Positions 10,701 through 60,292 of a stretch of 64,000 nucleotides of DNA are shown piece after piece. This DNA is from Monocercomonoides exilis PA203 (taxonomy: Eukaryota; Protista; Preaxostyla). Each line of letters opens with the position of its first letter. The first letter of the stretch is position 1. The notes beneath the pieces are model-generated. The model was not told the DNA's origin and ran no database searches. It worked only from the letters and a program-made list of their open reading frames with translations. The stretch lies in contig LSRY02000001.1 in the NCBI GenBank assembly GCA_001643675.2, positions 496,001 to 560,000 on the forward strand. The letters are read 5' to 3'. Made by a program: the position numbers and the translations under genes.

Positions 10701-13700
10701 GATGGATGATTTGGCGGAAGATAACCGAGTCTGCGTTGACTGCTGGGTCATAGCGCTTTGCCGTCTTGATCAGCTTCTCCGCAGGCACTTTGTGGATGCA
10801 GTCGATGATGCTGCTGCTGAGCACGCCTCGGAATGTTACAGGTGTGCGGAGCATAATCGTCTGCGCCAGTCCGGCAACGCCATCACTGATGTGATTCAAT
10901 GACGAAGTTGGCTTCTTAAAGTTGTGCTCTGGAAGCAGAAGCCACAGAATCCTGTGATAGTTCTCTTTGTCCTTCTTTTCTTTTGTCTCGTTTTGAACGG
11001 GTTTGCGCAATGAGCCGAATTTGTTCTCAATCCAACTCGAGAACAACTGCACAAACAAGGGAGATGCCAAATACAGCCCTTCCACTACAATCCATCCACC
11101 AGCATCAAAATGCTTGTCGAGATATTTCTCCGCTGCCTCCCACGCTGCTGCCCACAGTTCTGAGTGCACCTTCGCTTTCTTCGACGGCAGCTCCAGGCTC
11201 AGCTTCGCGTCTCGATAGAGCTCTGACACATGCACAGAAGTGACAGACACTTTGAGCTGCCTCCCCAGTTTGCATATGTCCCGCACCAGCCGCTGCTCCT
11301 CCACAGGCCCCAAGAAGTTGCTTGAGCGTGTCGCCAGCATAATCACACGGCCAGACGGAGATTGTGTGGCATTGAACAGTTTGATGGTGTGCAATGCAAT
11401 GGAATCAGACGGGTTCACAATCTCTTCCAAAGTCGGAACGCCGCAGTAGAAATAGCCGCTGGGTGTCATCTGCAGATGGTGGTCAGATGCCCTCAGCTTG
11501 TCCCCGATGCGCGGAGAAGGAAGCGACGTTGTGTTGAATGCACGCTCCACTCCAATCAGTGGCTGAGAAGAGATTGCCAGCAGTGCTGCATCGCGGAAGC
11601 GGCCCGGGTTGACGACAGCAATCAGCAAGAGGCGCTGGAAGATGTTGAGTGACTGCATCTGCTGGTTGGGGAACTCAGTTGTCTCCGGGTTGCTGTCAAG
11701 AAACCACTCTGCCCAGCGCTTTTGAGTGTTGGACATGAACACAGGATTCTGAGAAATATTCGCAGAGGATGTTGTTCGTGTCTTTCCAGTCCAGTTCTGC
11801 TGGGTTGATTGGAAAGATGACATCATGTTGAGCAGGTTCTGTGCTGCCTGCGCTGAAAAATCATTGAAGAACATATCTCCGCTGTTGTGTGCCACGTTCG
11901 TGTTCTCGTATTCTGTCAGGTTTCCAAAAAGCCTGCTGAATTTTGTGATCAGCTGCGAATCCGCCTGCTGCTGCTGTTGTTGTTGTGTTGTCCCGCCCAG
12001 CTTCTGTGACAGCCCGCTGCTGCTCTGCTGGGCATATGCTGTAGAGAGCGACGTGGGTGTGGTGAAGGTGAGCTCCTTTGTGAGTTCTGTCTGGATGAAC
12101 AAGAAACGAGACAGCACGTCTTCATCCACATCGAGTGGCTTCACTGTGTGCTGGCGCTGCGGAAACAGCTTCGCGAAGATCCGCTGATCGACAATCGACT
12201 TCGATGAAGCATGAGCAAATGGCTGGTACAGCGGCTGCACATTCTGGATGATGTTTGAAGGGGAAAAAGGGTTGGATGAGAGAGACAAGGCAGTTGGGGT
12301 GAACTCAGATGAAGCTGCGTGATTAGTCGGAGAGAACGGCAGCAGCTGCATCCGCTTGTTGCGCATCTGCATCGGAGTAAGCTGCTTCTTCAGGGGGCTG
12401 TTCCTCAGCACTGTCAGAAGCACCGAGCTCTTCACGTTCCTATCCACAGGCAGCTGGTCGATGATGGAGAAGACGCTGTGTGAGTGTGGATCGAGATCAT
12501 ACACAAACGGGCGGTAGGCCGGGCACAGCGCCGCCAGCACGAACAGGTCCTTCCACGTCATCCCAGGCAGCCACGAAGGGACAGGATTCACCGGAATTAA
12601 TCCCGATGACTGGAGAACAGCCGACTCGATGGGGAAGTGGAGCTGGACGACTTCGCAGAAGAGGAGTTTGCGCGTCTCGAAGTGGTGGGCGTCGGTGCGG
12701 GTGGCGACGGGAGTGCGGGGCAGGTCGTGGAGGGTGAGCACCTGGGGAAACAGGAGAGCGTCCATCTCAATGTCAGACAGCCCCTCTTGCTTCTCGTTCG
12801 CCAGCTGCAGGGCAATGAACAGGAAGAACGTGAGGCAGTCGTTCTCTGAGCTGCACATGGACATGAACTTGCGGAAGATGCAGCGTGTGACAATGTCCAA
12901 GATTCTCCCTCTTTGTTGTTGGGTGATGCCAATGGGGGAGGTGTTTGGGTCGCTGTGCTGGTGCAGCTTGATCAAAGCACGGCGCTGCTCAAGTTGCACT
13001 TCGGCTCGTCTTTGTGCGTTGAATGTGAAGAGGAGACCGCTGGTGGAGGAGATGACTGCAGAAGAAGCAGAGGAAGAGGCAGAGGAGGAAGGGGAGGAGG
13101 AGGAAGGGGATGTGCCAATTATCTTCATTTTGCCAACGAGATCTGAAATGGAGTCTGTTTGCTTGCCGAATGCTTGCATTGAGGCAGATACACCAGATGA
13201 GGAAGAGGAAGAAGATGAGGAGGAAGATGATGAACCAAGACTGAGTCTGCGTCGTGAGTGATACTGTTCAGATAGAGATGGGCTGTATGAAGGTGACTCA
13301 ACAGGTGAAGAAGGAGACAGCAGTGTGGATGTGGAATACAGTTCATGTTGCATTGATCGGGGTGAACTGAGGAAACCAGACGCAGAAGCAGAAGAAGAAG
13401 CAGAAGAGGAGGAGGAGGAAGAAGAAGAAGGCAGTACATCCCTTGATGCAGTATTGTTCACCCCTCCCATTCCATCCTCAAACAAAGGCACGAACTCGTC
13501 AGTCGCAATCATCGACTTCCTGTTCTCCGTCTCCATCACGCTCTTCACCAGCGTAACAAGCCCTTCCACAATGGCGTGAAACCTGGGCGACCCCCACACC
13601 TCTGGCGCCTTCATCCCAAACGGCCTTCCAGTCACTCTGAGCCACGCGTGGCTGATCATTGCGAGCGGGTCAGCCACTGGCCGCACATGATTGGCCTCCC

Positions 13701-38053: not shown

Positions 38054-38056
38054 GGA

Positions 38057-38129
38057 AGCCTCAACGGAGAATCGAACTCCGGACCTCTTGCTTACTAGGC
38101 AAGCGCTCTGCCAACTAAGCCATTGAGGC
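38057..38129 (-). tRNA. trnT-AGT: tRNA-Thr (anticodon AGT)
   Basis: The minus strand reads GCCTCAATGGCTTAGTTGGCAGAGCGCTTGCCTAGTAAGCAAGAGGTCCGGAGTTCGATTCTCCGTTGAGGCT. This gives a 7-bp acceptor stem, anticodon arm CTTGC-CTAGTAA-GCAAG and T-loop GTTCGATTC. Confidence 0.97.
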
Positions 38130-38139
38130 TTTCGTCAGT

Positions 38140-40483
38140 TGACCTTTTCTGAATTTATCTGGTCAATTCGTATTGTTATTGCAAATTCGTATTTAATCAA
38201 TTATTTCCGTTTCGACTCAATCAAAACGGTTTTATGTCTATCTTTTTTGATCTTTAGAAAATTTTTAATATGTTTTTCATCTGATCATAATTTATCATAT
38301 CTTTATTATTTCTTATGAAATACAATGATCAAAGTATTGAAACGCTGGAATCAGTAATTATAATATATTAGCGACACATTTATGAAGTGTTTGATTATCA
38401 TCTTTCACTCTGATTCTGTGACATTTTTATCTCTAATGTTTACGTTTTTTGAAGATGTGAGAGTTTTATAATTTAAAAACGGAGTGAATATGTTTTCCCC
38501 ATATAACTCTGGAGCTTTCCATTTATTGTTAATTGCGATTTTTGTGTTTTTCACAAATAAATTTACATATCAATAATGTTTGTTAAGCTTTTTTATGAAA
38601 ACAACAAAACAAGAGTTTTTTCAATGACGAAATTTATTGTTTTTTTATTTTTAACAAGAAAAAAAATGAAAATTTTCAAAACTGTTCATTGTTATATGAT
38701 TTTTTGAGGTGTCTGAACAATACAGGAAAAATAATAATAATAAACAGTTCTAATGTTGACAATTCAGTAAAAACTGAAGGGGTGTTTGATTAGGTTTTCT
38801 GGTTGAATTTTGTGTTGAAGATGACGAAGCGGATGAGGAAGATGATGGAAGTGAAGGAAACTGTTGTGAGGAAGGTGGAAAAAGTGTGCTAACAGATTTC
38901 CATTGATTTGGGATAAACCATGACAAAGAATTATCGGAATTTTGAAGCTGAATGTTGTGCTCGTCCCTTCCCCTACTCAGTAAATCTGATCTCTGCTGCT
39001 CTCTTTGGATCATTACTTTCTCTTGTTCATTTTCTCTTCTTTCTTTGGCTTTTGACATTGCGTATGTCTCATCTGAGCTATCTAAAATAAAATAAAACAT
39101 AAATATGGGTAACGAGAAGGAAAAAAAAGTCAATAAATCAGAAAATAAATGCAATATGGGTATTTAAGTGTTCAAAAAACTTGTTGATTCTGCAGTTAAA
39201 GACGTAATTGTGGGAGTTAATGAATCTTTTGGATTAAGTTTATTTCTTAATCTGGCAAGGTATCTTTCATTTGCAAGGCTCTTTGCTTCCTGTTTTCGAA
39301 GATAATCGCTTATCATTCCATCCAAAAATCTTGAATTTGCTTGTGAGTCAATCGCAGTGAGTGGATTATGAAGAATATGAAAATTAGTTAGGCAGCAAGC
39401 CACATTGAAATAGTCAGCAATTCGATCAATTTCGAATATCCATGGTTTGCGAAAGATGGAGAAGAGTGTTTTCATCCTTCCAAAGAACCTTTCAACTATT
39501 ACACGATGGGAAGCAAGCTCCTGTGTGCCAACGGGCTTTGTTATGATAGCGTCAAGGTCTGGTCTGGCACCAATATATGCAGAATCAGCTAGAATTTTGG
39601 ATCCCTCCAGTTTTGATTCAAACAATGGATAATGCTCTTTGAATATAACATAGTCATGCGTGGAGCCTGAGTAAATAGCGCTAATGGTGCTTGCTGTGCC
39701 AACCTTTGGGTTAACGCCCACTTCTGCCTTGACACAGTAAATATGGTGTTTTCCACTAAAGAACTTTTTTCCATATTCCAATCGACCACCTGGTCGGTTA
39801 GTCGGAATCACAGTGCAATCAAGCACTATTCCAACATCCTTCATGCTCTCTATTCTGTCTTTGCGGAACGACAGAAAAAGATCGGCCAAAGGCGCTCGAA
39901 GCCGAGACACAATGGAATGAAGCAGTCTTACAGTCGCACTTTGAGAGTCGAGTTTTTTTGATGCAAGTATGTTTGTGAGGGTGCAAGAGCCGTGATGGAG
40001 AACATTCAAAAGCAAAAATAATTGCTCTTCCAGTGTGTTAATTGCTTTTGCCTTTCCCCGATGAGGAAGTGAATCATCTGGAAGCAGTCTTAGTAACATG
40101 TCAAATTCTGATCGCACAAAGCCCGTGAGTCGAAAGAATGCACGAGATGGGTCCTTCACATCTTTGCATGCACATTCGATAAGTGATAGGTTTTCTTTTC
40201 TTTTCGTTGATTCAAAATGTTCAGGTATTGCGTTTCTTCTTTCAACACATTCCAAAACATCCAAAAGTGGAGATTGTGACATCAAAAAATTTTTCAACAA
40301 TAAAAAAATTGATCAAACCCATATTTTTGAAAATATCTGAAGAAAGATCACAAACCCAGAATTTGTTAAATTGGTCGTGACTTAATCAAATCGGTTTTGA
40401 GTCGATCTTTTTGGTATTATGAACCACTTTTTGGTCTTAGTCGAAGCTAATACCGCATTACTTAATAATTTCGTTTTAGTTCT
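38140..40483 (-). mobile_element. Element E1 (2344 bp), putatively autonomous, nearest the tRNA
   Basis: Flanked by AGT/AGT, with imperfect TIRs, shared subterminal GACTCAATCAAA motifs and an intact transposase gene. Confidence 0.88.
38750..40282 (-). CDS. DDE_Tnp_4-type transposase of E1 (exons 40282-39181, 39081-38750), intact
   Basis: HTH_Tnp_4-like FFRLTGF..EFD, then LDCT..NRP, FSGKHH, GSTHD, LADSAYIG and RVIVERFFGRMK (D-D-E triad). A 99-nt phase-1 GT-AG intron precedes the C-terminal exon. Confidence 0.9.
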
Positions 40484-40486
40484 AGT

Positions 40487-41455
40487 AGAACTTGATTGAT
40501 TTGACTGAGTCGCGAAAATGTGACTCAGTCAAATCGATTTATGTCTGGTTTATTGAATTTCTCTATTTTTTATCGAATTTCCCTCAATCTTAAGAAGGGC
40601 GAAAATGTGATTTTTATGATCACAAAACGTGATCGAGCATTTTTTTGTTTTGTTTATATTTTGACCTGTAAAATCATGTTGATGTTTATTTTTTGATATG
40701 TTGCTATTTAATTTGTGTTTATTCAATATTTATCTCATTTTTTGGTGTTTTAAAAGTTTGATTCAGCTTTTTGATAATTTCACATTTTTGTTATTGCGAC
40801 TTTGTTATCAACTTTTTTGATTGAAATCGATACAAAACTTTTTGTATTTAATATGATAAACGTTTGCACATACGATTTATTTGAGTTTTTTTTGTTTATG
40901 AAAATATTTTTAACATTTTGTTTTTTTAAATGTGCATCATGTTTTGAACTGAATTGTTTTATGTTGTTTTGATTACTTGTTTAACAAATAAAAAAAGAAA
41001 GATGTTGCAAGCATTGTTCTTTTGAAATTTCATTCATTTCAAATTTTTTGAAAAGTTATAATAAAAACAAAATATTTTTGTTAAGAGTAATTCTTAGTTC
41101 GCGATAATCACATAAATAGTTTTTATTTAATGTGACAATACTTTCTGATAATTTCAAATTTATTAAAAAGGTTAAACTCAAAATTATTTATGTTTTTTTG
41201 AAACTTTTATAAAAATTTCATATAATTTTTTATAAAAACAATTATAAATGAATTTTATTCAGCTTTCTGAAAGAAAAAACAAAGTTTTAACAAGAAATAT
41301 TTTTTGTTTAAATTAGGATCAGGAGACCCAGAATTGAAAACATCGGATGCGACTGAGTCACATCCAATTTGACTGCATCTTAATGGCATTAGATCGATCT
41401 TATTGGATGTTGACCGATCTAATGCCACTTGACGCAGTCAAATCAATCAAGTTCT
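40487..41455. mobile_element. Non-autonomous element M1 (969 bp)
   Basis: Perfect 21-bp TIR AGAACTTGATTGATTTGACTG...CAGTCAAATCAATCAAGTTCT, AGT flanks, no significant ORF. Confidence 0.9.
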
Positions 41456-41458
41456 AGT

Positions 41459-43796
41459 AGAACTTGTTCGAATTTTCCCTGCCGCACCGAATTGATCCTG
41501 TTAATTCGAATTATTTGTGACTTTTTGAATGTTTCTCGCTCAATTCGGTATTTTCTCAATCTTTTTCCAGGCAACTCGAGGATTTTCAAATTTTTTTTGT
41601 TTTGTGACTTGTGATCTTAACTTTTTTTGTTTATTAAATTACTTCACCATTATTTTGAGTTAGGTTTTAACTTTTTGTTTGTATGTTTATTATATGTAAT
41701 TAAAACTTTTTATGATCGGTTTTTGGTGTTTTGATTATTTTTTGAACAGTGCATTTATATCATGTTTTTATGCAATTTTAACGAGTATAAATAACTTTTA
41801 ACCATTTTTAACTATATTTTTTATATGTTTAGTATAAATATGAAAGTTCTTAATGTTTTAATTATATTTTTTTAATAAATTCAGACATTTCACATTTTTA
41901 TTTTTTGTTTTGAGTATTAACAATGAAATAAAGTTATTCGATAAAAATTTCTTGTATTCTTATGTATGTTTTATGTTAAATTAAACAAAAAAACTTATCA
42001 ATAATAAAATCATATTGTATTAAGATAAAAAGGTAACAAAGGTGAATTGAAAAATATAAAATTGCAAAGAAACTCAGTGTTTTGCGTTCAATAAGCTCTG
42101 CAAAGGAGTTTCGCTGACTCTTTTTTCTTTTATTGAAGCACTAGAGGAAGAAGCAGATGGAAAGGAAGACGATGATGAGGGTTGCTGAAGGCGAAGAGAC
42201 CTCCACTGATTTGGTAAAAACCAACTTGATGATTCATCACTGTTTCTTTCTCTTTCTTCATCTTCATCTCTTTCGTTAATAATTATTTCATCTCTCCTTT
42301 CCTTTTCTTCAACTGTTTTCTTTTCTTTCTTCTCCTTTTCATCTTTTCTTTCTTTTTCTCTTTGATCTTCACCAGTTCGCTGCTCTTGGGCTTCAGAATT
42401 GCCTGAAAAACATAGTTATGGTAATGTAAATATAAAAACAAGTAAAATAAACGATATAAACATAAATATGGGTAAAAATAAAAAAGTCTAACTATCTTCC
42501 GAATAAAACAGAGTTGTGATTGATGATGGTGTAGGAGCTTCAGGATTCAATCTTTTCTTCATATTGACTCGATAGCGTTCATTAGCGATTCGCTTTGCTT
42601 CCACTTTCTTCTCATGTGACTGCATCAGATATCCAATGAATCGAGAATTTGCATCTGAGTCGACTGCAGTCAGTGGGTTTTTCAGGATGTGAAAATTCGT
42701 TAAACAGCATGCAATTGTAAAATACTCCGCCACTCTTTCCACTTCAAATGGCCATGGACGCCTGAAAACTGCAAAAAGAGTCTTCAACCTCCCAAAAAAT
42801 CGCTCGACAATTACTCTTTTGCATGCCAATTCGGGTGTTCCGACAGGTTTTGAGATTATTGCACCCAATTCTGGCCTTGCTCCAATGTATGCTGAGTCAG
42901 CAAGTATCTTTGCTCCTCCCAATTGACTCTCAAATTGAGGTAAATGATCTTTGAAAAGGACAAAATCATGTGTTGACCCAGTTTGAACGTGGCTAATTGT
43001 ACAAGCAGTACCAATTCGAGGATTAACACCAACTTCCACCTTCACACAGTAAATATGATGCTTTCCACTATAAAATTTCTTTCCATATTCCAACCTCCCA
43101 CCTGGTCGATTTGTTGGAATTACAGTACAATCCAAAACAAGACCCACCTCCTTCATTCCTTCTAGACGATCTGGGCGAAAAGTGAGAAATAAATCAGTCA
43201 AGGGCACTCTGATGTCTGCAGCAATTCTGTGAAGAAGTCGAATTGTTGCATTTTGAGTGTCATAAAAAGAAGAAGAAAGCATAAATGTTAGTGTGGTGGA
43301 TCCATGATGAAGAAAAGTGAGTAATAGAAAAAGTTGATCAGAAAAATTGTTCATTGCTTTATCTTATCCTTGGTGAGGAGATATTTCTTTTTGAAGAAGT
43401 TGAAGTAATAAATCGAACTCAAATCGGGCGAAGCCCGTAAAGCGAAAAAAAGCAGTTGGTGTGTTGTCCAAAATATTCAAAGCTCTTTCGATGATTGAAG
43501 TGGTTTTTTTTGTTTCTTTGATAGCAGGAGAAGCAGGCATTTTATTTCTTTCTTCTACTCTCTCCAATACACTCAAAAGTGAAGATTCAGACATTGATCG
43601 AAACAGTCAAAAAATGATAACAACAAACACACCCTTTATATGTAAATATTTTTGTGATCAAAAAGGACCCATGATAAAAAACAATGGATGTGATTAAATC
43701 ACATTGGAACTTAGTCGATCTTTTTGGAATGATATCAAACTCATACCAAAAAGAAAATATTAATACGATATAACTAAATAAATTCGAATAAGTTCT
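41459..43796 (-). mobile_element. Element E2 (2338 bp)
   Basis: TIR AGAACTTGTTCGAATTT / AAATTCGAATAAGTTCT (16/17 match), AGT flanks. Confidence 0.9.
42074..43594 (-). pseudogene. E2 transposase with one in-frame nonsense codon (TAA at 43366-43364); intron 42492-42403
   Basis: PHQG*DKAMNN aligns to E1 PHRGKAKAINT. DDE motifs are intact. Exon 2 contains SWFLPNQWRS and ends TPLQSLLNAKH*. Confidence 0.85.
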
Positions 43797-43799
43797 AGT

Positions 43800-46170
43800 T
43801 GAGCTTTTTCGAATTGAGTGCATAATTTTGATTTGACTCAATCAACTTGCATTTAGTCAATCTTATTTGATTTGACTTTATCAAATCTGATTTGAATAAA
43901 TCATTTTTTGATCTTTTTTGAAAACAATTATGAGTCAATTACGATCAAGATATTGATTTAATTTTTCAAACTCTCTTCCTTGTTGGTAGATCTTAATAAT
44001 ACAACAAGTTTGTGAATTCTCTTTTTGATTGTTTTTAGTATTTATTGTTTATTTTCAACATCTCTTCTTCTGATTCGGATCATAATGAACAATTTGATAC
44101 TTACATTTTTAACACGAGCAAGAGATGATCAACAGTTGAAATTTAATTTATATCTGTATTTCAGAAAAACAAAAAGCTCTTTCGATCCAATTTTGTTTTC
44201 TTTTTTGTTTTTGTTAGGTTTTTTTTTCATTTCATTTTTAATAATGTATTTTGAATATAAAACAAACAAATATTTAGAAATTTTATAAATAAATGCAATT
44301 TTTGTTTTTCATTCAAAAAAATAAATTCTGAATTGGAAATATTAATTATTAAAGATTATAAAAAAGATGAGATGGTTGCTAAAAGAAGTTAAAGAAAAAT
44401 TAAATGATAATCACTTTTTATTCAGCAACGATTGAAGAACAGATGGGGGTTTATTTTGTTTTGAACCAACAGAAGAGGAAGAAGAAGCAGTTGATGAAGA
44501 TGATGATGAAAAGGAAGTAGAAGGTTGTGATTGTGAAAATGAAGGAAAAGGTTGAGTTGAAAATGGAGAAAAAATACTTATCGACTTCCATTGCTGCGGA
44601 AGGTGCCAAGCTTGTGAATTATCACAATTTTGATTTTCATCAAAATCATTTCTTTCTTTTTCCAAAACCTGTTCCCTTTGCTCGCTTCTTTGTACTAAAA
44701 CTTCGCTATTCGCTCTTTCTCTTCTTTCTTTAGCTTTTTCTGCTTCGTACGCCGTTTGATCATCATCAGAAGCATCTAAAATAAAAAAATATGGTAAAAT
44801 GATGTTTATAAAAATGAAAAAATTGTAATAAAATATAAAAAATAATGGTAAAAAAGTGAAAGATAAGCCTCCAATTTCTGCCAAAATTGTAGTTATTGTG
44901 GGTGTCAGTGTATTTTCTGGATTGAGTTTATTTTTCATTTTGGCGAAATATCGAGCATTAGCCACCTTCTTTGAATCAACTTTTCTCAAGTAATTCGAAT
45001 ATAACTCCTCCAAAAACAATGAATTTGCTTCAAAATCCTTATTTGTGAGTGGATTGTGCAAGATATGAAAGTTTGTGATGCAGCAAGCCACTGAAAAATA
45101 GTCCCCAACACGCTCCATTTCAAAAACCCACGGATGACGGAAGACAGAAAAGAGAGTTTTGAGCCTTCCAAAGAATCTTTCAACAATAACACGATGAGAT
45201 GCAAGCTCAGGAGTTCCAACGGGCTTTGTAATAATCGCCCCAAGCTCTGGTTTCGCTCCCATGTTAGCGGAATCGGCCAAAATCTTAACTCCTCCAAGCT
45301 TTTGAACAAATGTGGAGTAATGTTCTTTGAAAAAAGTGAAATCGTGAGTTGACCCAGAGTAAATAGAACTGATTGTACTTGCTGTCCCCACCTTGTGGTT
45401 CACTCCCACATCCGCCTTAACGCAATAGATGTGATGCTTCCCTGAGTAGTATTTTTTTCCAAACTCCAACCTCCCTCCAGGCCTGTTTGTAGGTATTACT
45501 GTGCAGTCAAGCACAATTCCCACCTCCTTCATTTGCTCTAATCGATCTGGACGAAATGAAAGAAAAAGATTTGCAAGTTGAGGTTTTAAATTTGATGCTG
45601 TTGAATGAAGAAGTCGAACAGTTGATGTTTGAGATTCGTGTTTTGATTGAGATATGACGTGAGTTAAAGAAATGGAGCCGTGGTGAAGAAAAACTAACAA
45701 AAGAAAAAGTTGTTCATCCAAAGATTCGATTGATTTTGCCCTTCCACGATGAGGTTGGGCTGAAGATGAGAGAAGACGAAGAAGCAAGTCGAATTCATGA
45801 CGAACAAACCCAGTCAGTCGGTGAAAACCGAAAGATGGGTCAGAAAATTTTTTACAAAATTTATCGATGATTGATTGCTGATCATCATCAGATTTAATCT
45901 CGACATGAGATGGCATCACATTTCTTTTCTCCACGCTCTTCAAAATATCGAAAAATGGAGATTGAGACATGAATGATGAAGTTTCAAAAAAGTTAAATAC
46001 AAAAACACCCATTAATAACAATTATTATCGATCATATTCGCACCCACAATTATAGTAATTTGCATTGACTCAATCAAATCGATTTGTCTCGATCTAATTT
46101 GCATTATATTTAACTTATCTGCTTTAGCAAAGGCAAATAATATATGACCAGTTCAAATCGCATAAGTTCT
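43800..46170 (-). mobile_element. Element E3 (2371 bp)
   Basis: AGT flanks, ends TGAGCTTTTTCGAATTGA / TCAAATCGCATAAGTTCT, shared subterminal motifs. Confidence 0.87.
44411..45970 (-). CDS. DDE_Tnp_4-type transposase of E3, open frame; probable 93-nt GC-AG intron 44868-44776
   Basis: Starts MSQSPFFD and contains LDCT, YSGKHH, LADSANMG and RVIVERFFGRLK. The C-terminal exon has AWHLPQQWKS and ends VLQSLLNKK. Confidence 0.88.
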   Translation of the reverse strand: MSQSPFFDILKSVEKRNVMPSHVEIKSDDDQQSIIDKFCKKFSDPSFGFHRLTGFVRHEFDLLLRLLSSSAQPHRGRAKSIESLDEQLFLLLVFLHHGSISLTHVISQSKHESQTSTVRLLHSTASNLKPQLANLFLSFRPDRLEQMKEVGIVLDCTVIPTNRPGGRLEFGKKYYSGKHHIYCVKADVGVNHKVGTASTISSIYSGSTHDFTFFKEHYSTFVQKLGGVKILADSANMGAKPELGAIITKPVGTPELASHRVIVERFFGRLKTLFSVFRHPWVFEMERVGDYFSVACCITNFHILHNPLTNKDFEANSLFLEELYSNYLRKVDSKKVANARYFAKMKNKLNPENTLTPTITTILAEIGGLSFTFLPLFFIFYYNFFIFINIILPYFFILDASDDDQTAYEAEKAKERRERANSEVLVQRSEQREQVLEKERNDFDENQNCDNSQAWHLPQQWKSISIFSPFSTQPFPSFSQSQPSTSFSSSSSSTASSSSSVGSKQNKPPSVLQSLLNKK

Positions 46171-46173
46171 AGT

Positions 46174-47140
46174 AGAACTTGATTAATTTGACTGAGTCGC
46201 GAAAATGTGACTCAGTCAAATCGATTTTTGTCTGGTTTATCGAATTTCTCTATTTTTAATCGAATTTCTCTCAATCTCAACAAGGGCGAAATTGTAATTT
46301 TTATGATCACAAATTGTGATCGAACATTTTTTTGTTTTGTTAATTTTTTTATTATTACAAGTTCACAAACGTTGAATTTTCAATATATTATTGTTTAAAA
46401 TACTTTTTTTAATATTCGTTAGATTTTTTGTTGTTCACTTTGTTTGATTCTGGTTTTTTGAAACCTTAAAATTTCGCAATTGTGGCTCAATTGTTTACTT
46501 TTATTGTTGAAATTGAACCAAATTTGTTTATATTTTGTACAACAAACATTTTTATATCTTTTTTTTTGTTAATTTTTAATATTTACAAAAAATTAAACTT
46601 TTTTGTGTTTTCTTAACTGTTGTGTGTTTATTAATCAATCATTGTTTGATATTTTTTCATTTCGAATAAAAATTGAAAAGAAGATATGATTCTAAAGCTT
46701 CTTTTTTTGTATTTTTTCTTTTTTCTGAAAATTATTGAGAAACGCAAAAAACAAATGAAACTTGTTCTAAAGATTGAAAAATGAAATGAAATTTACATGT
46801 ATCATTATAATTAATCACCAATAATTATTATCAAACAAAAACAATTTGAATTCCCAGGATATTCCGTTTAATACCAATAATTTTTAAAAACTTAAAGAAT
46901 AAGAAACTATTTTGAATGAAAAATCATTAAATTCTATCAAAATGTTATAAAATTGAACGCAATTTATTAATTTAAATTATAATTTTTAATAAAAATTCTT
47001 TGATCATGAAACCCAGAATTGAAAGCATCGAATGTGACTCAGTCACATCCAATTTGACTGCGTCTTAATGGCATTAGATCGATCTTATTGGATGTTGACC
47101 GATCTGATGCCACTTGATGCAGTCAAATCAATCAAGTTCT
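46174..47140. mobile_element. Non-autonomous element M2 (967 bp), same family as M1
   Basis: TIR AGAACTTGATTAATTTGACTG / CAGTCAAATCAATCAAGTTCT, AGT flanks. The ~150-bp ends are nearly identical to M1. Confidence 0.9.
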
Positions 47141-47143
47141 AGT

Positions 47144-49470
47144 AGACGTTTTTCGAATCTTGGACAAAAAATTAATTTGAATAAATAACATAGATGTCAA
47201 CCTCTTTTTTTGGTATTGATTCAATCAAATTGGAACTTTCTCAATCTCACTTGGTTTAAAATAGGAATTACGAAATGTTTGAAAAACTGATCTTATTATT
47301 TTTTTGTTTCTTCTTTTATTTGATTCTTTCGTTTCGATTATTCACAAAACTTTGATTTAATGTGCATCAATATTAAATTCATGGTGTTTTGATCTGTTTT
47401 CAGCAAATTTTGAGTTTTTAAAAAGTTCAAAAGGTTTGCAATAATTTTAAATTCTTACACATGATAAACTTACGATTGAACATTTTAACGAATTCTTATG
47501 ATTATTTTCACATGTTATAAGCTATCAACAGCTGCGCCGTTTTATTTTAAATCAGGATCATTAATAACACTTTTTCAACGTTTATTTCAAATAAAACTCA
47601 AGGGAAAACAACGATTTTTGTTTCATTTTAATATTTTCCATTAATATTTCATGATATACGAACAATAAATTATATTTTTATTCGCTTTTATTATTTTTTA
47701 TTAAAAAAGGTGAATGATTGAAAAATAGAAAAAAGAAAAGAAAAAAACTAATTTCTTTGTTCCAAAAGAAGCCTCAAAGGACTTGGCGTAATTCTTTTCA
47801 CCTTTTCTGGTTCTGATGAACGTGATGTTGAAGGAAAAGGAGATGAAGAAGATGCAGAAGAAGGTTGGATTGATTTCCACTGACCTGGTAAATACCAGGC
47901 CATAGAATTATTATCTTCGTCATTATCATTTTCTTTCAAATCAATCCTTTTCGTTTCATTTCTATCTTTATCTTCTTTTTCTTCTTTTTCTTCGATTTTT
48001 TGCTTTTCTTTCTTTTCTTCTTCACAATTCTTTTTCAGTGCGCCTTCCTTTTCATTCTGTGAAATATCTGAATAAAAAAAATGAGAAAATATAATGGTTG
48101 AAAGAGTAATCAAAAAAATCAAATAAAAGATAATGAATATAAATATGGGTAAAGAAATGAATAACAAACTGTCTATTTGTGTGCATAAAGTAGTTATCGT
48201 GAGTGTAATTGACAAGCTCGGATTCAAATTATTATTCTATTTTATTCGATATCTCTCATTCGCTATTTGTCTTGCTTTTTGTTTTTGTAAATGCTCCGTT
48301 CACAAGTTGTCCAAAATACGCTGATTTGCTTCCCCATCTGCCCTTGTCAACGGATTTCGTAATATCTGAATATTTGTCGAACGACAAGCCACACAGAAAT
48401 AATCTCCAACCCTTTCAACTTCAAATGGCAACTGTCTTCGAAAAACTGAAAAGAGGGTCTTCAGACGATCGAAAAAACGTTCCACGATGACTCGATGAGT
48501 AGCTAGCTCTGGAGTTCCCACTGGTTTGGTGATGATTGCAGCCATATCAGGTCTCGCACCTATGTAAGCTGAATCAGCCAGTATTTTTGCCCCTCCCAAA
48601 CGATCCAAAAATTGAGGATAATGATCTTTAAAAATTGAAAAGTTATGAGTGGAGCCAGAATGAATTGCACTGATAGTACTCGCTGTCCCAACTTTGGGAT
48701 TGACTCCGACCTCTGCTTTCACACAATATGTGTGATGTTTCCCGCTAAAAAACTTCTTCCCGAAGTCTTATCTACCTCCAGGTCTGTTGATGGGAATGAT
48801 TGTGTAGTCCAAAATAATTCCAATCTCCTTCATCACTTCAATCCTGTCAGGGCGAAATGTCAAAAACATATCTGCTAATGGAGCTCTGATATGAGAAACG
48901 ATACTTAGAAGAAGTCGGACAAGAGCGTTTTGAATTTCATAGAAAGGTGAGGATAAAATAGGTGTGAGTGTTGTTGAACCGTGATGAAGAAAAGTGAGCA
49001 GCAAGAATAACTGTTCATCAAAATTATTGATTGCATTTTGTTTCTCTCGACGATGAGGAACTTCCATTTGAAGAATGTGAATGAGAAAATCAAATTCTTC
49101 TTTTGTAAATCCAGTGAGTCGAAAAAAAGAAAAAACAGGATCATCAAAATAATCACAAGCTTTTTTGATGATGGAAATCTTTTCTTCTTTTTGAAGTGAT
49201 TCATTCCGTTGCGGAATAATATTTCTCCTCTCCACACTCTTCAAAACGTCCAAAAAATTTGAATGTGACATTTAAAAAAATAAGAACAACTTTCGTTTGA
49301 TCACAACCAAATATTGAAATTCTGTTAATAACGATCACGAAACCAACATTTGTGAATATGAATGTTATTGAATCAAATCAAATAAGTTTGATTCTTTTCG
49401 GTCTTTAATCCATATAATAAAGTGTGAACATATCTTTTGCGGATACATCAAATAAAATACAAAAGGTTCT
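47144..49470 (-). mobile_element. Element E4 (2327 bp), decayed
   Basis: Left flank AGT, right flank ATT. Ends AGACGTTTTTCGAA / AAAAGGTTCT. Confidence 0.85.
47748..49271 (-). pseudogene. E4 transposase pseudogene (several stops plus a frameshift); intron 48169-48068
   Basis: GGR*DFGKKF is followed by a 1-nt frameshift into SGKHHTYCVK, with further stops at DNL* and RIK*. Exon 2 has AWYLPGQWKS and ends PLRLLLEQRN. Confidence 0.85.
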
Positions 49471-49473
49471 ATT

Positions 49474-50268
49474 AGAACTTTAACGAATTGAGCTGGTCAA
49501 TACGAATTGATAAAATCAAAACATTTTAAGTTTTTTTATTAGTTTTGACTCAATCAATTCGGTTTTCCCTCTATCTTTTTTGTGATCAAAAAATCAAAAA
49601 TTATGTATCAATTTTTATCGAAATTCTTAGAAGTTTTTTGTGTTTTCTGAAACAGAGCAGTTTGTATTTATAAATTTTTTGATATGTTGATTATTTCTTA
49701 ATTTATTATTTGTATGTTGTTCATTTTTTTCTGAACAATGTATGAAATTGAACGATTTTATTCATTTTTGAGTAATTATTCGAAGAGATGTGTTTTCAAT
49801 GAATAATTTTGTTGTTTAAGTCATTTGAATCTATGTTTTTCTTTTCTTTTTAATTCAATTTATTATAACCTTGTTCTATTTTGATCATTTTATTTGAACA
49901 CTTCAAATCAATAAATTATAATTAAAAGAATAATAAACACTTTTTATTTTTTGAATTCATTCTATTTTGACAGATAGAAAATTGAACAAAGGATTTTTAA
50001 AAGTGTGAAAACTTTAAAACTCCATTTTTTTCAAGAAGAAACATGAACTTAATAATTTTTATGAAATAGACTTCATTTATTGATGAAAAATTGACAAAAA
50101 CAAAACTCTTTATTTTGTTGATTTTCAAATAATCGTATACCCAGAATTGAATCAATCGGTCTTGACTCAATCAAAACGGTTTTGAGTCTTCCTTTTTGGT
50201 TTTATGAACTACTAGTTGGACTTAGACTGAACTAACGGGTATTGATTTGATAATTTCGTTTAAGGTCT
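49474..50268. mobile_element. Non-autonomous element E5 (795 bp) with E1-like ends, most distal from the tRNA
   Basis: ATT/ATT flanks. The last ~130 bp align with the E1 right end (CCCAGAATT..GACTCAATCAAAACGGTTTTGAGTC..ATAATTTCGTTTAAGGTCT), and the left end resembles the E1 left end (CTGGTCAAT.CG.ATTG). Confidence 0.85.
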
Positions 50269-53348: not shown

Positions 53349-55974
53349 TTGTGGAACATAATTATAATTTTATTTGAAAAAATCTTAAAATTGTTATTAC
53401 AGGAAATAATTCTCCTTTTCATTTTTTTTTTGTTTGATGAGTTAATTCAATGCAACTTGTGAACAAGTGAAAATTTGATTTTTGTTACAAAAAATCAATG
53501 AATAACGAAGATATTAGAGTTCCATGTTTTCTGCATTCGCACACATAGGCTTTGTTCAATTGTATTTTATTGTAATTAGATGATGTTCAAAAAATAAATT
53601 TAAAATATTATTTCCATGATGATTTATATATGGTCACAGATTAAAATGTTGGATGCTCATCTTTTCTATCAGTTTCATATGGAAAAGCCTTGATGTATCA
53701 GCTTACAGGAAAAGAAGTTGAAATTATTCAAAAGAATGAAAATAAAGGTTCTGTTGAGAATCAACGGTTGCAATGGATGAATCTGAGTAAAGAAATTGAT
53801 GGACTTGTGAACAAGGTTTGACAAGGGTAATTTATTTGTGAAATTTAATCTTTTTTGGTTAATGTCCCAAATATGAAGGAAATAGCAAAAAAGCTTTAAG
53901 CGCAAAATCAAGTTAGCTGAAGAGGTGGGCGATTATTTTTGTTATAACTTCTTTTTTCGGTGAGTTAGATATTAAATTGTTTTATCACTATTGAGAGAAA
54001 TTATCCATTTGAAAGAAAAATACTGAGAAATTTGTTTCAAATAACGATATGTGGAAAAATGTTTTGTTTCAGGCATTTTCGTTGAAAAATTATTCACTTT
54101 TCAGTGACTTTTTGAGAACATAAAACATGATAAAAGTGGGTCGATTTTTTGCAATTCGTGAAATAACACAATAGTTTATGTTTAGATTTTTTTTTGATGC
54201 TTGTTTACGTATATGAAATTCAAATTGATTTTGAAATCTAAGAAAGTGAAATAAAGTCATGAGAGAAGCAATTTTTCAATGCCTTGTGGAAAAAAAGCTT
54301 GAAAGTCAGTATTTCCCTACATATTTCAGATTATATATAGGAATATATTATTAATGAAAGGAGTTGGGAACTTATCAGTATATAAATATAAATTTATCAG
54401 TAGAATTCAAAAACCGATAATTTTGATAGATAAAATATGATTTCGAAAATAATCACACAGATTTGAAAAATGATTGAAGTTATTTTGAAGGAACGTTGAA
54501 ATTGTTAAAACAAACTTTTAAAAAAAAGGCATTATTTCTTTTTCACTTCATTTTTGAAGATGATGAGGCAAACTTCATTCGCACAGTTTTGAGATTAATC
54601 TCAATCGGTTCTATATAGCAACATGAAAATATTCTTAAAATATTGATTTCTCAATTAACTGTCAAAAACAATTTGGTAATAAGCATTGTTGTTTTCAACA
54701 TTGAAAAGAAAAGTCAAAAGACAAATTCAAAGAGAAACTTGCTTGGCAAATTTAAAGTGAGTACAGTCAAAACCGGATATAATCACATCGGTTTTTGCAC
54801 AACTTTATGTGATTATATCCGATAGTGATTATATCCGATAGATGAAAATCGCGTCTATATAAAAATGAATCAATCAAAGTTTTAATTGCAGAATTATTTG
54901 TTTTTTCAAAGGATTGCAATAAATGTTTTTTTAAGCATTTTTTTTTATTTCAAAAAAATATCATTTTTCATTTTATTTAAATAAATTTTGAAAATCATAA
55001 ATAATATAATTTGAGATCAAAGATCAACTTAAAATAATAAATACAAAGTTGTTTTAGATAGGAGGCATATAAACGTATATTAATGACAAATTCAAATCAT
55101 CCATGTTAATGAAGAATGAACATCAATCTTTTAAAGAATAATTCAACTTATACGAGTTCATTTTCTCGTAAATAATATTTTAATATGTTTTTGAAAGAAG
55201 ACAGTTCTTTCTGTGTTATTGTAAGCATTCTTTAATTGTTAAATATTTCTTTAAAACAGAAGATTGTTGTTATTGTTTTTTTTTTGTCAACTCGTTTGTT
55301 TAACAAAGTAATTCATCAATTTTTGACAAATTTTCGCACGTCAAAGTTTCATTGGGATATAAAATTTCTTGGAAGCTTGCTCAAGAATGAATGTTCTTAT
55401 AAACAATTTCTTTGTGTGATATGTTATTTAATCATTATTGTTATATGTTTTTCATATTAAAAAATTATGTTTGTAGTTATTGTTACGAAAAAAAAGTTTC
55501 TAATATTTGTGAAACGCAAAATTAATCAATAAATTTAAAAATTACAATATTCGAATGTTTTTATCAATTTTTGAAGAATTCTTTATTCGTTTCTTTCATT
55601 TTCTCATTCATTCTCCACAAACAAAAAAACCAAATTCCCATGAATAATAAAAAGCATTTCAAGTTGGAGAAAAGAAAGAATATCTCGAGATACTCAGTTT
55701 TTGGATGAGAATATCATGAACGATATGAAAGAAAAGTATAATTAAAGAAAAATGGATAGACAAGAGATATAAAAAAAGAACAGTTTTTTTATTGAAAATT
55801 GAATGAGATCATGCAGACAAAAAGGAAAACGATTCAATATGTTTAATAAATAAAGAAATACATATTCACGTTAAAACAAAGTGGAAAAAAAGGTGCAAAA
55901 GTGAATTAAAAAAAAAATCTTATAAAAAATAATCAATTAAATATTATGAAAAAATTTTCATCATATTGCCAACT

Positions 55975-58640: not shown

Positions 58641-60292
58641 TCAAACAATGTCTTTCTTTTCTTTTCCTGCACCACCTTTTTTTCCAACTGTGTTCTCATG
58701 TGAATCACGCTCATCTGTTGTTCCGAACATGTTGAAGTCTGTTAATGAAGGCTGAATCAGATTATTAATTGCAACTTTTTCCAGTAAATCTTCGACTTCG
58801 TTAATAACTATATGACTATCTTTGGGTGGTGACTTATCTTCGATGAACTCTTTGAACATGTTCCACATTATATTTGCCTCTCCAATTGTTTTAACTTTTC
58901 TTTTTCTTCCTTCTTCATCAACTTTCACCTTCAAGGCTATTTCATCTTCGGAAACATTCGACTTTGATATTATTGAATCAACAATCTCTTCTTCGGATAG
59001 AATTTCTCTTGTTATTTCGTGATCTTCAGCCGAGTAAAATTCTTCGGCAGTTATTTCATAAAGATCGCTGTCTCTTGTTTTCAATTTTTCAAACAGCATA
59101 TTATACTCGTTCATTTCATCTTCATCGATATTCACAATTTCTATTTCTTTTTCTTTAGCCGGATCCCATTCCGCATGCTTGAAACAATTTTCTATTGTTT
59201 CCTTTTGACTTTTTTCCTAGCTTTTTCCACCATGTTTAATACTTCAAGCATTGAAATCTTCGTTGCAACCCCGCATTCAACTTTTACCAGTTTTTTTCTA
59301 AGAAATTGACATTTATAGAAGTGTTTAAAGACTTTGATAATACCTGCGTCCATTCGTTGGATAATGGACGTTACATTAGGAGGTGAATAAAATAATGAAA
59401 CATGAGATAAATTGAATCGATCTACACTATGAGCTTCACAGTTGTCCATAATTAACGCAATTTTCCTATGTGAAATGGACTTTTTTTCGTTAAGTCTTTT
59501 GACGTAAACATTAAAAATGACTGCATTCATCCATCACTTTTTTGAATGATTATAAAGGGTTGGTAAGAATTTTCCTATTAAACATCTTGGCGATTTTGAT
59601 TTTCTAATCACTAGAGGGCATAGCTTTTCAACTGTCATGCTTGCTGCAAGAAGAACGGAAACCCTATCTTTCGATTGTTTGATTCCAGAAACAGAACAAC
59701 TGCCTTCGGTAAAAGTTTGTTTTGCTGATTGATTGTTAAATAAACCTAATTCATCCTCGTTGAATATGTTGCTCTCCCCAAATTGATTTATAATTGTAGG
59801 TAAAGAAAAATCTATCCATTTGTAGGCACTTTCCTTGTCTGCAGACAATGACTCTCCAACGATTTTCTTTGAAGTTATATTGTATCGCATTCTCCTTCGT
59901 TCTATCCAACTATACCAGTTGCGTTCTGAAGGATTTTTGTAGTGAAATTGATTGGCGAAATATTGTGTTTTCTCTAAAAGCATTCTTCCATCAATAGCCA
60001 TTTCAGGATTTGTTGACCTTATTTGTCGAAACCAAATAATCATTGCTTCATCTAACTCTGGATATATAGTTGGTCGAATTCGAAATGTGATATCAGGCTT
60101 TATTATAGATGAACTTTGTTTTAATATTGCTTCTTTGTTTTTATATATTTTTGAAATTGTTGAGAAATCAATATTAAAATCTTTTGCAATGATATTTTTA
60201 GATTGAGGAGGGTTCGAACTCAAATTGTTGATGATATCTAATTATTGAACAAAAGAAAGTTTTGTTCTTTTATTCACACCTGTTGTTTTCAT
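58641..60292 (-). pseudogene. pogo/Tigger transposase (psq/CENP-B HTH + DDE_1, DD31D) with two in-frame stops and a frameshift
   Basis: Reads MKTT..KRTKLSFVQ*LDII..IAKDFNIDFSTISKI, then YPELDEAMIIWF, FNEDELGL, SKDRVSVLL, SKK*WMN and LIMDNCEAH..PPNVTSIIQRMDAGII. Frameshift near 59200. Confidence 0.88.

Follow-up and report, generated by a model that had tools for sequence, protein, structure and literature searches.

Organization of the transposon stack

The window (the whole 64-kb stretch of Monocercomonoides exilis DNA that was analysed) contains a single tRNA gene, tRNA-Thr(AGT), with a stack of four transposon copies upstream of it, c1 to c4, each carrying a DDE_Tnp_4 (PIF/Harbinger-type) transposase gene on the minus strand. 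The positions of the genes, exons, introns and intervening elements are shown in Table 1. Copy c1 lies nearest the tRNA gene and is the only fully intact one, the others having the stops or the unusual splice donor listed in the table; c4, which also has a mutated LDCT, is the most decayed and lies furthest off. We conclude that the stack arose by repeated hits at the one tRNA-Thr gene.

Table 1. Features of the transposon stack and its tRNA gene, in window coordinates; L001, L002 and L003 are other M. exilis loci.
Feature	Position	Strand	Details
tRNA-Thr(AGT) gene	38054..38130	-	ARAGORN; Rfam RF00005, 67.1 bits; target of the stacked insertions
c1 unit	38140..40590	-	2451 bp common with L001; 97.2% identity over 2454 bp to L001 9691-12141
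c1 exon 2	38753-39081	-	stop codon 38750-38752; motif 1 38894-38923 SWFIPNQWKS; motif 2 38762-38785 TPLQFLLN
c1 intron	39082-39180	-	99 nt, phase 1, GT..AG; retention gives an in-frame stop; +19 word ACCCATAT
c1 exon 1	39181..40282	-	ORF, intact transposase core (DDE_Tnp_4); Pfam PF13359, E=4e-23
~1-kb non-autonomous TIR element	40486..41475	.	TIRs TAGAACTTGATTGATTTGACTG; inverted repeat I2; between c2 and c1
c2 unit	41459..43893	-	94.7% identity over 2452 bp to L002 7364-9815
c2 exon 2	42077-42402	-	motif 1 42197-42226 SWFLPNQWRS; motif 2 42086-42109 TPLQSLLN
c2 intron	42403-42492	-	90 nt, phase 1; early stop if retained
c2 core	42493-43594	-	PF13359, E=1e-21; one in-frame stop at 43364-43366
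c3 unit	43894..46172	-	~2.28 kb; core 44869-45970, PF13359, E=2e-15
c3 exon 2	44414-44775	-	motif 1 44582-44611 AWHLPQQWKS; motif 2 44420-44443 SVLQSLLN
c3 intron	44776-44868	-	93 nt, phase 1; donor GC not GT; open in frame
Second ~1-kb non-autonomous TIR element	46173..47141	.	82% to L001 12143-13113; inverted repeat I5; between c4 and c3
c4 unit	47142..49712	-	decayed; 79% identity to L003 9593-12305
c4 exon 2	47751-48067	-	motif 1 47871-47900 AWYLPGQWKS; motif 2 47760-47783 SPLRLLLE
c4 intron	48068-48169	-	102 nt, phase 1; no in-frame stop
c4 core	48170-49271	-	PF13359, E=1e-10; three in-frame stops

The units are mobile, and occur at other loci with different flanks at 95-97% identity. Their size, put at 2.3 kb in the initial annotation, is 2.34-2.45 kb when measured against copies elsewhere. 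The c1 element proper would span ~38141-40484 if its distal 106 bp are a remnant of a ~1-kb TIR element. The TIR element at 40486..41475 has partial homology to L001 12143-13113 (71% over window positions 40486-41071 and 92% over 41317-41475), and this L001 copy itself lies 8-9 nt upstream of a tRNA-Leu gene. The family's element ends read TAGAAC.../...GTTCTA, with a degenerate 3' end of the c1 type (AAAGGTC). As to the 3-bp TWA target-site duplication of PIF/Harbinger elements, the junctions ...GTTCTA-C-TAGAAC... and ...TTCA-T-TAGAAC...GTTCTA-T-TTCATTA fit either a TA duplication or none.

All four transposase cores match PF13359 (DDE_Tnp_4), and the residues D155, D233 and E264 are invariant in a transposase alignment. 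The cores of c1, c2 and c4 are 55-66% identical to that of c3, and the c1 core is 98% identical to the M. exilis protein P0001. DDE_Tnp_4 and DDE_Tnp_1 are the only Pfam matches in the units, in which no second ORF of at least 60 aa with a Pfam match was found outside the transposase gene, and neither a Myb/SANT nor a YqaJ gene. The family thus consists of single-ORF PIF/Harbinger-type (DDE_Tnp_4) cut-and-paste transposons of this oxymonad.

A C-terminal exon behind a conserved intron

Each of the four genes has a phase-1 intron of 90-102 nt followed by a second exon that encodes a C-terminal tail. The introns are 15-23% GC, and the M. exilis averages are 119 nt and 27.6% GC. Five public M. 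exilis gene models (P0002, P0003, P0005, P0006 and P0007) use the same intron and acceptor, the acceptor of P0002 being that of c4, and intron phase, position and acceptor are kept in all clades. The end coordinate 48067 given in the initial annotation coincides with the first base of c4 exon 2.

The tail exon could in principle be a separate small ORF or a gene-prediction artefact and not part of the transposase, as three further public models (P0001, P0004 and P0013) end inside the intron and the copies in the window are judged from sequence alone. This is very improbable given the conservation of the intron in all clades, an intron size and GC content close to the species mean, and the absence from exon 2 of any separate start codon in a conserved position. 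Moreover, tail dN/dS is well below 1 in the intact pairs (0.26 for c1 and the L001 copy, 0.11 for c2 and the L002 copy), and the tail is under purifying selection; the value of ~1.2 for c4 and the L003 copy reflects neutral decay. The homologous phase-1 intron, the five gene models and this selection bear out the proposal that all four transposases carry a C-terminal exon, which is probably spliced to the core.

Motifs and predicted structure of the tail

The tails are ~105-120 aa long, Ser-rich and charged, with 13-22% Ser (9-10% in the cores) and 21-44% K/R/E/D, and only 28-42% identical in pairwise comparisons of the four copies. Each contains a motif 1 of the form [SA]W[FHY][IL]P[NQG]QW[KR]S and a motif 2 of the form [ST][PV]L[QR]xLL[NE]. 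A six-frame regular-expression scan of the whole window found no match to either motif beyond the four tails, and every motif pair lies on the minus strand downstream of a DDE_Tnp_4 core. About 20 further paralogous tails are present at seven other M. exilis loci (L001-L007), in all of which the W, P, Q, W and S of motif 1 (W-x-x-P-x-Q-W-[KR]-S) are invariant; in an alignment of 11 tails motif 1 is invariant at five positions, with a mean column identity of 25%. Judged on these alignments, the two motifs are the only strongly conserved parts of the tail across the ~20 paralogs, in keeping with the earlier description of a charged, Ser-rich and otherwise poorly conserved segment. Motif 2, which had been called terminal, is near-terminal, lying three to six residues from the C-terminus, and is predicted to form a short amphipathic helix, [ST]PLQxLLN.

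An AlphaFold2 model of the c3 read-through ORF, built on a 13-row alignment and with a low overall mean pLDDT of 53, predicts a charged helix at residues 406-443 (pLDDT ~72), a disordered linker at 444-510 that includes motif 1 (pLDDT ~30), and a short helix at 511-518, coincident with motif 2. The tail had been described as disordered, and the model agrees with this, the charged and terminal helices excepted. We conclude that the tail is a genuine short-motif module.

Insertion upstream of tRNA genes

The end of c1 is ~10 nt upstream of the 5' end of tRNA-Thr, and this arrangement is general: in ~214 kb of M. exilis DNA, all seven tRNA genes called (Thr, Leu, Lys, two Gly, Pro and Phe) are preceded, at a distance of 7-17 nt, by the end of a family element. 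The proposed association with tRNA genes is therefore real. Transposase gene and tRNA always share direction, and the insertions all lie outside the tRNA genes on the upstream side, leaving them intact. Because the Pol III transcription start site lies ~10 bp upstream of mature tRNAs (PMC5911963), the insertions fall roughly at the start of transcription. A narrow upstream window combined with many tRNA identities is the criterion by which Pol III-gene-targeting elements such as Ty3, DGLT-A and TRE5-A are recognized, and the M. exilis family shows both.

Such a pattern could also arise if the transposase directly recognized DNA, either tRNA-gene sequence (the A box, +8 to +19) or existing element ends, with the tail irrelevant to targeting and perhaps regulatory or autoinhibitory through intron retention. 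There is a precedent in the Dada transposons, which insert inside the gene and read the tRNA sequence directly (PMC8869645). New insertions also enter the short gap between an older element end and the tRNA gene, intron retention would give a tail-less isoform of c1 and c2 through the early stop, and the intron word at +19 is conserved. We nevertheless consider direct recognition unlikely, since the six tRNA species hit have unrelated sequences upstream, and a gap that varies from 7 to 17 nt is a better fit to measuring from a bound complex than to one DNA word. The insertions are upstream of the gene, unlike those of Dada, and the c3 and c4 introns lack the in-frame stop that a truncated isoform would use.

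Tail-less relatives

The tail occurs in M. exilis proteins only among the 150 best matches of a profile search over 1.84 billion representatives, and the tail profile has no match in Blattamonas, at loci L010 and L011, or at metagenome loci. By these searches it is restricted to the M. exilis clade. The closest outgroup transposase, P0017 (locus L010), groups with the M. exilis elements in a supported clade (98/93) and lacks the tail exon, the motifs and a second ORF. Its element end and the 5' end of a tRNA-Asp gene are nonetheless 4 nt apart, the orientation relative to the tRNA being opposite to that of the M. exilis family. No tRNA gene lies within 10 kb of two Blattamonas copies that also lack the tail.

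The comparison thus comprises the two Blattamonas copies and a single informative copy from the outgroup, and because their outcomes differ it is mixed: the idea that relatives without the tail would also lack tRNA association agrees with the Blattamonas copies and fails for P0017. Since P0017 is tail-less, single-ORF and tRNA-adjacent, the tail is not strictly required for tRNA targeting, nor for doing without a Myb partner, and targeting may be determined by N-terminal or core parts that P0017 and the M. exilis elements share; the wider clade has in common the N-terminal word [LV]E+RN.IP. The suggestion that the tail stands in for a missing partner ORF is right about the absence of a Myb/SANT or YqaJ ORF, but P0017 lacks tail and ORF alike.

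Possible roles of the tail

The initial proposal of a tethering tail is partly supported, by the tail module itself and by the tRNA association. Our best explanation, put forward tentatively, is that the tail acts as a docking module of short linear motifs that would bind a host protein. The catalytic core is joined through the conserved phase-1 intron to an exon for a predicted charged helix, a Ser-rich linker and a terminal helix, and the leading candidate partner would be the Pol III pre-initiation machinery at tRNA genes (TFIIIB, TFIIIC or Pol III). The integrases of Ty1, Ty3 and Ty5 and ORF1 of TRE5-A suggest this candidate by analogy, and all characterised Pol III-targeting elements make protein contacts with TFIIIB, TFIIIC or Pol III (PMC5911963). 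Given the tail-less P0017 at a tRNA gene in opposite orientation, the tail would more likely refine, orient or strengthen target capture in M. exilis than create tRNA targeting anew. A more specific version is that the two motifs form a portable tether to TFIIIB, TFIIIC or Pol III that sets both position and orientation, on an exon gained in the Monocercomonoides lineage atop an older, looser tRNA preference; we regard this as doubtful.

Alternatively, the tail may bind host proteins, or the transposase itself, for purposes other than targeting (nuclear import through the K/R/E-rich helix, transpososome assembly or dimerisation, or recruitment of repair factors), replacing the Myb-like ORF1 protein of two-ORF Harbinger elements, with targeting residing in the N-terminal or core region common with the outgroup. 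The single-ORF structure of the units, the tRNA-adjacent position of the tail-less outgroup and the widely shared N-terminal word are in keeping with such a role, as is the prediction that the charged helix is the sole confidently folded part of the tail. We think it possible but not probable, as the outgroup dispenses with ORF1 without having a tail, the tails share no conserved canonical NLS pattern, and both invariant motifs lie outside the basic helix.

Comparison with known transposons

Nearly all work on position-specific integration beside Pol III genes concerns retrotransposons, the sole scope of two reviews (PMC5911963, PMC5006619). What the M. exilis family shows is a PIF/Harbinger-type element at approximately the Pol III start of many tRNA genes, a single orientation, and a lineage-limited, exon-encoded tail with motifs. 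As tailed and tail-less relatives are both found at tRNA genes, the family is a testable system whatever the role of the tail.

The M. exilis elements resemble PIF/Harbinger transposons (Harbinger3_DR, PIF and Ping/mPing) in their DDE_Tnp_4 domain with conserved D, D and E columns, short TIRs, subterminal repeats and MITE-like non-autonomous derivatives mobilised in trans. They differ in their single-ORF structure, which leaves out the Myb/SANT partner gene, in the spliced disordered C-terminal tail, and in their fixed position and orientation upstream of tRNA genes, whereas PIF/Harbinger elements occupy dispersed TWA sites. ISL2EU elements have a 2-bp TSD and, in some members, a YqaJ exonuclease ORF; no YqaJ ORF was found in the M. 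exilis units.

Dada DNA transposons (Kojima & Jurka 2013; Kojima 2022) are, like the M. exilis family, DNA transposons at Pol III-transcribed tRNA genes, being specific for Pol III-transcribed small RNA genes including these. No other group of DNA transposons is known to target tRNA genes. Dada elements belong to a different transposase superfamily, and each family is tied to one or a few tRNA species (PMC3706591, PMC8869645). They enter the gene itself, at a site defined by its sequence, whereas the M. exilis insertions lie upstream of intact tRNA genes of many identities.

The retrotransposons Ty3, DGLT-A and NLTR-A, which insert at or near the Pol III start, offer a closer positional parallel, lying from a few to ~17 nt upstream of where the mature tRNA begins, irrespective of tRNA identity and hitting the same gene repeatedly. 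The M. exilis enzyme differs in being a cut-and-paste DDE transposase and not a retroelement integrase, and in its strict orientation. The C-terminal targeting domain of the Ty1 integrase binds AC40, and that of the Ty5 integrase binds Sir4. The descriptive likeness to these is that a recombinase has a C-terminal extension, disordered and fast-evolving, with a short conserved motif in it, although the M. exilis tail has two motifs and a charged helix, and a tail-less relative is still found at a tRNA gene. Should the tail prove to be a tether, it would give a simple DDE transposase a targeting peptide that is compact and can be transferred, of interest for safe-harbour integration tools. It would then also be the first equivalent in a DNA transposon of the targeting domains of the Ty1, Ty3 and Ty5 integrases, and a clean example of convergence with the Ty elements.

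Transposase genes and their tail exons

Between 38 and 50 kb of the window, four minus-strand genes (copies c1 to c4) encode proteins with a match to the transposase domain of PIF/Harbinger-type elements, Pfam DDE_Tnp_4. Introns were located by reading the DNA and their junctions by script; each gene contains one phase-1 intron followed by a second exon of 105–120 codons and a stop. Only c1 is intact throughout; c2 has one in-frame stop, c4 has three, and c3 carries an unusual donor, its intron having a GC donor and remaining open in frame, so that c3 shows up as a single 536-aa ORF. This natural read-through ORF (window 44414–45970, minus) served as the contiguous core plus tail in our analyses; otherwise the exons were searched separately.

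Coordinates of the tRNA gene, transposon units and core-tail introns in the window
Feature	Position	Strand	Comment
tRNA-Thr(AGT)	38054-38130	minus	sole tRNA gene of window
c1 unit	38140-40590	minus	matches L001 9691-12141, 97%, 2454 bp
c1 intron	39082-39180	minus	99 nt, GT..AG
c2 unit	41442-43893	minus	matches L002 7364-9815, 94.7%
c2 intron	42403-42492	minus	90 nt, GT..AG
c3 intron	44776-44868	minus	93 nt, GC donor, open in frame
c4 unit	47001-49712	minus	resembles L003 9593-12305, 79%
c4 intron	48068-48169	minus	102 nt, GT..AG

The tails encoded by the second exons are rich in serine (13–22%) and charged residues (21–44%), and are only 28–42% identical to one another, compared with 55–66% for the cores relative to c3. 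A six-frame regular-expression scan of all 64 kb finds exactly four sites for motif 1 ([SA]W[FHY][IL]P[NQG]QW[KR]S) and four for the near-terminal motif 2 ([ST][PV]L[QR]xLL[NE]), every one downstream of a DDE_Tnp_4 core, and no further match to either. The initial annotation described the tails in these terms, as Ser-rich, charged and poorly conserved outside two motifs, and is borne out down to the spellings of the four motif pairs and the end coordinate 48067.

Its claim that the tail is a spliced second exon also holds up, in that four indirect lines of evidence agree that exon 2 appears to be joined to the transposase. The homologous intron or its acceptor is used in public gene models P0005, P0003, P0002, P0006 and P0007 (93–99 nt), the M. 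exilis annotation pipeline having used Augustus, EVM and PASA with ONT cDNA (PMC8767320). Intron position and phase are kept across all clades. Nei-Gojobori dN/dS values for the tail are 0.26 for c1 and its twin at paralog locus L001 (core, 0.29), 0.11 for c2 and L002, and 0.16 for c1 and c3, with ~1.2 reached in the decayed c4–L003 pair. The core-tail introns (90–102 nt, GC 15–23%) are of a size and composition to be compared with species means of 119 nt and 27.6% GC. That exon 2 is no part of the transposase protein is accordingly a most improbable alternative. A ciliate genetic code was also considered and ruled out, as the tails end at both TAG and TGA.

The word ACCCATAT occurs 19 nt past the donor in the core-tail introns of c1, c2 and c4, with ACCATTAT in c3. 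Its intron sites in the window are at 39103–39110, 39154–39161, 42466–42473 and 48143–48150, the window as a whole has five matches where 0.65 are expected, and related words are found in introns of distant paralogs (L002, L005 and L007). Its function may be to control splicing, given that c1 and c2 run into an early stop when the intron is retained. Pairing between the 5' UTR and the intron through this word was dropped because the c1 5' UTR word is not repeated in the other copies.

Paralogs in M. exilis

The top protein matches are seven M. exilis entries annotated as "putative DDE superfamily endonuclease", with P0001 98% identical to c1 exon 1. The seven paralog loci (L001–L007), taken from assembly GCA_001643675.2, contain ~20 additional tails with both motifs by regular-expression and ORF scans, including those of a divergent clade (P0004, P0006 and P0007) in which the tail reaches 279 aa. 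An alignment of 11 tails has a mean column identity of 25%, with five motif 1 residues (W, P, Q, W and S) invariant, and at E<0.001 a tail profile matches 19 ORF pieces, none outside the M. exilis loci. Public models of the divergent paralogs termed clade B (P0007 in L005, 11031–11882, and P0006 in L007) excise a second 'intron' of 107–108 nt that deletes motif 1; this is probably a mis-annotation, because the L005 tail ORF runs uninterrupted through the motif.

Structure of the tail

An AlphaFold2 model of the c3 read-through ORF, built on a 13-row alignment and of low overall confidence (mean pLDDT 53), places a helix at residues 406–443 (pLDDT ~72), the K/E/R-rich beginning of exon 2, followed by a segment at pLDDT ~30 (444–510) that includes motif 1, and a short helix (511–518) corresponding to motif 2. 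The model gives no sign of motif 1 packing against the core. Pfam searches of the tails return sub-threshold low-complexity matches only (e.g. DUF3824 and DUF4834) and no domain, a tail profile against PDB chains gives only noise (E>=0.77), and the transposase core has no PDB match. A disordered tail with short linear motifs, as initially proposed, is thus a fair description of what the model predicts. Motif 2 was also considered as a PCNA PIP-box (QxxLxxLL), which was ruled out because the Q is found only in c1 and P0005.

Insertion next to tRNA genes

Unit boundaries were set by comparing copies across loci. A gap of ~10 nt separates the end of the c1 element from the tRNA-Thr gene at its 5' end. 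Similar junctions are present at the paralog loci. At L001, a ~1-kb non-autonomous element with inverted ends (TAGAAC...) lies 8–9 nt before tRNA-Leu and is itself abutted by a c1-type copy; at L002, the end of the last copy is 9 nt from an intron-containing tRNA-Lys gene, called by ARAGORN only with the intron option; and at L004, 7 nt separate the element end from tRNA-Gly, in a junction that occurs twice within an inverted duplication. Clade-B 3' ends precede tRNA-Pro at L006 by 13–14 nt and tRNA-Phe at L007 by 16–17 nt. Across ~214 kb of M. exilis DNA, all seven called tRNA genes have a family element end 7–17 nt upstream in a constant orientation, counting only default-threshold ARAGORN calls, as the relaxed -ps85 setting gives dozens of spurious giant-intron tRNAs. 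Two arrays at L003 and one copy at L006 have no tRNA gene following, and around the copies without a called tRNA, Rfam at E<=1 adds no other Pol III gene. In yeast, the Pol III start site is ~10 bp upstream of mature tRNAs (PMC5911963), which is roughly where the M. exilis insertions lie.

We interpret the four copies in the window, together with two ~1-kb elements, as stacked insertions that arrived one after another at a single tRNA gene, with the intact copy adjoining tRNA-Thr and the most decayed furthest away. L005 also contains a tRNA-like sequence (12848–12940; B box GGTTCGA and a T-run) 12 nt past a clade-B element end, which is called by neither ARAGORN nor Rfam and is excluded from the count.

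Other features of the window and paralog loci

The ~1-kb non-autonomous elements (window 40486–41475 and 46173–47141; L001 12143–13113) have inverted ends of 22–45 nt (TAGAACTTGATTGATTTGACTG) and share end sequences with the autonomous copies. Partly palindromic subterminal words, GACTCAATCAAAACGGTTTTGAGTC and TGACTCAGTCA, recur between the genes in 10 copies from 38187 to 50205 (e.g. 40372–40420 and 50157–50205), and are probably transposase binding sites. Merlin-type (DDE_Tnp_IS1595) transposase genes are present in or beside the arrays at L007 (12135–12950), where the gene has a clade-B copy on one side and the clade-B end fragment nearest the tRNA gene on the other, and at L001 (2896–3741). 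A ~280-bp repeat is dispersed among the window (54041–54324), L002 (17193–17463) and L005 (12358–12639 and 20096–20367), with one L005 copy interrupting a clade-B element. Elsewhere in the window, a minus-strand ORF (59534–60223) encodes CENP-B N-terminal and Tc5 HTH domains and is probably the remnant of a pogo/Tc5-like transposase. An intronless minus-strand ORF of 9013 aa (7708–34749) is 17.5% serine with polyQ and polyS runs, has a GC content of ~50% against 25–35% in its neighborhood, and contains no Pfam domain at E<=1e-5.

Tail-less relatives and the role of the tail

A profile search with core plus tail against 1.84 billion representatives gives 980 matches, and among the best 150 of these the motifs are confined to M. 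exilis proteins. Searched by word index on its own, the c3 tail (residues 416–536 of the read-through ORF) gives nothing at E<=0.1, missing even the M. exilis paralogs, and is thus uninformative on relatives elsewhere. The nearest outsiders are metagenome or SRA-assembly proteins (P0017, P0018, P0021 and P0022) and proteins of the oxymonad Blattamonas nauphoetae, with those of Entamoeba invadens more distant. In a maximum-likelihood tree, midpoint-rooted for drawing only, the M. exilis copies form a monophyletic group (98/96) within a supported clade (98/93) shared with P0017, P0018, P0021, P0022 and Blattamonas. Judged by this placement and the distribution of the motifs, the tail is a derived character, specific to the M. 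exilis clade. An N-terminal word, [LV]E+RN.IP, occurs in c1–c4 as well as in the tail-less P0018 and P0022, and may represent an older functional determinant that both groups share.

The initial annotation proposed that the tail motifs tether the transpososome to TFIIIB, TFIIIC or Pol III in place of a Myb/SANT or YqaJ partner ORF, and comparison of tail with tRNA association cuts both ways. In two near-identical Blattamonas copies (L008 and L009) the tail exon is absent and no tRNA gene lies within 10 kb, which fits a tether. Against it stands the P0017 element, a 1.73-kb single-ORF unit without intron or tail at 104–1836 of a 2-kb contig (L010, from SRR21023576), with ends TAGAC...GTCTA. A gap of 4 nt separates the 5' end of this element from that of a tRNA-Asp(GTC) gene (28–99, other strand) called by both ARAGORN and Rfam (62 bits), the orientation being opposite to that of the M. 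exilis elements; a second P0017-type copy (L011) has a different flank. Such exact adjacency is very unlikely to arise by chance, which argues that the wider clade targets tRNA genes with neither tail nor Myb partner ORF, and weakens both halves of the proposal, the tether as well as the suggestion that the tail stands in for that partner. No tRNA gene accompanies thirteen further, more distant metagenome relatives, whose contigs are too short to be informative. A contig from a human-gut metagenome assembly (L023), possibly of human origin, was left out of all scans and comparisons.

Direct DNA recognition could do the targeting and the tail be regulatory, which we consider unlikely. The main alternative, somewhat doubtful in itself, is that the tail binds partners with no part in choosing targets, for example factors for import, assembly or repair. 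The reading we tentatively prefer, short of thinking it probable, is a docking module of two short motifs and a charged helix that would bind a host protein, and would have been acquired in the Monocercomonoides lineage by a transposase already favoring tRNA genes. Its most likely job would be to strengthen or orient the capture of Pol III-bound tRNA genes. Overall, the initial interpretation is partly supported.

Comparison with known systems

The genome paper for M. exilis reports 4.5% DNA transposons and nowhere mentions tRNA, and a limited literature search turned up no DNA transposon described as targeting the region upstream of tRNA genes. Domain and ends make the element PIF/Harbinger-type. 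The M. exilis units are without a Myb-like second ORF, and as to the TWA duplication of PIF/Harbinger, their junctions would fit either a TA duplication or none. In behavior the M. exilis element is unlike Dada DNA transposons, which use sequence to insert within tRNA genes (PMC3706591, PMC8869645), and similar to Ty3, DGLT-A and NLTR-A, whose insertions fall at the Pol III start or just upstream of it.
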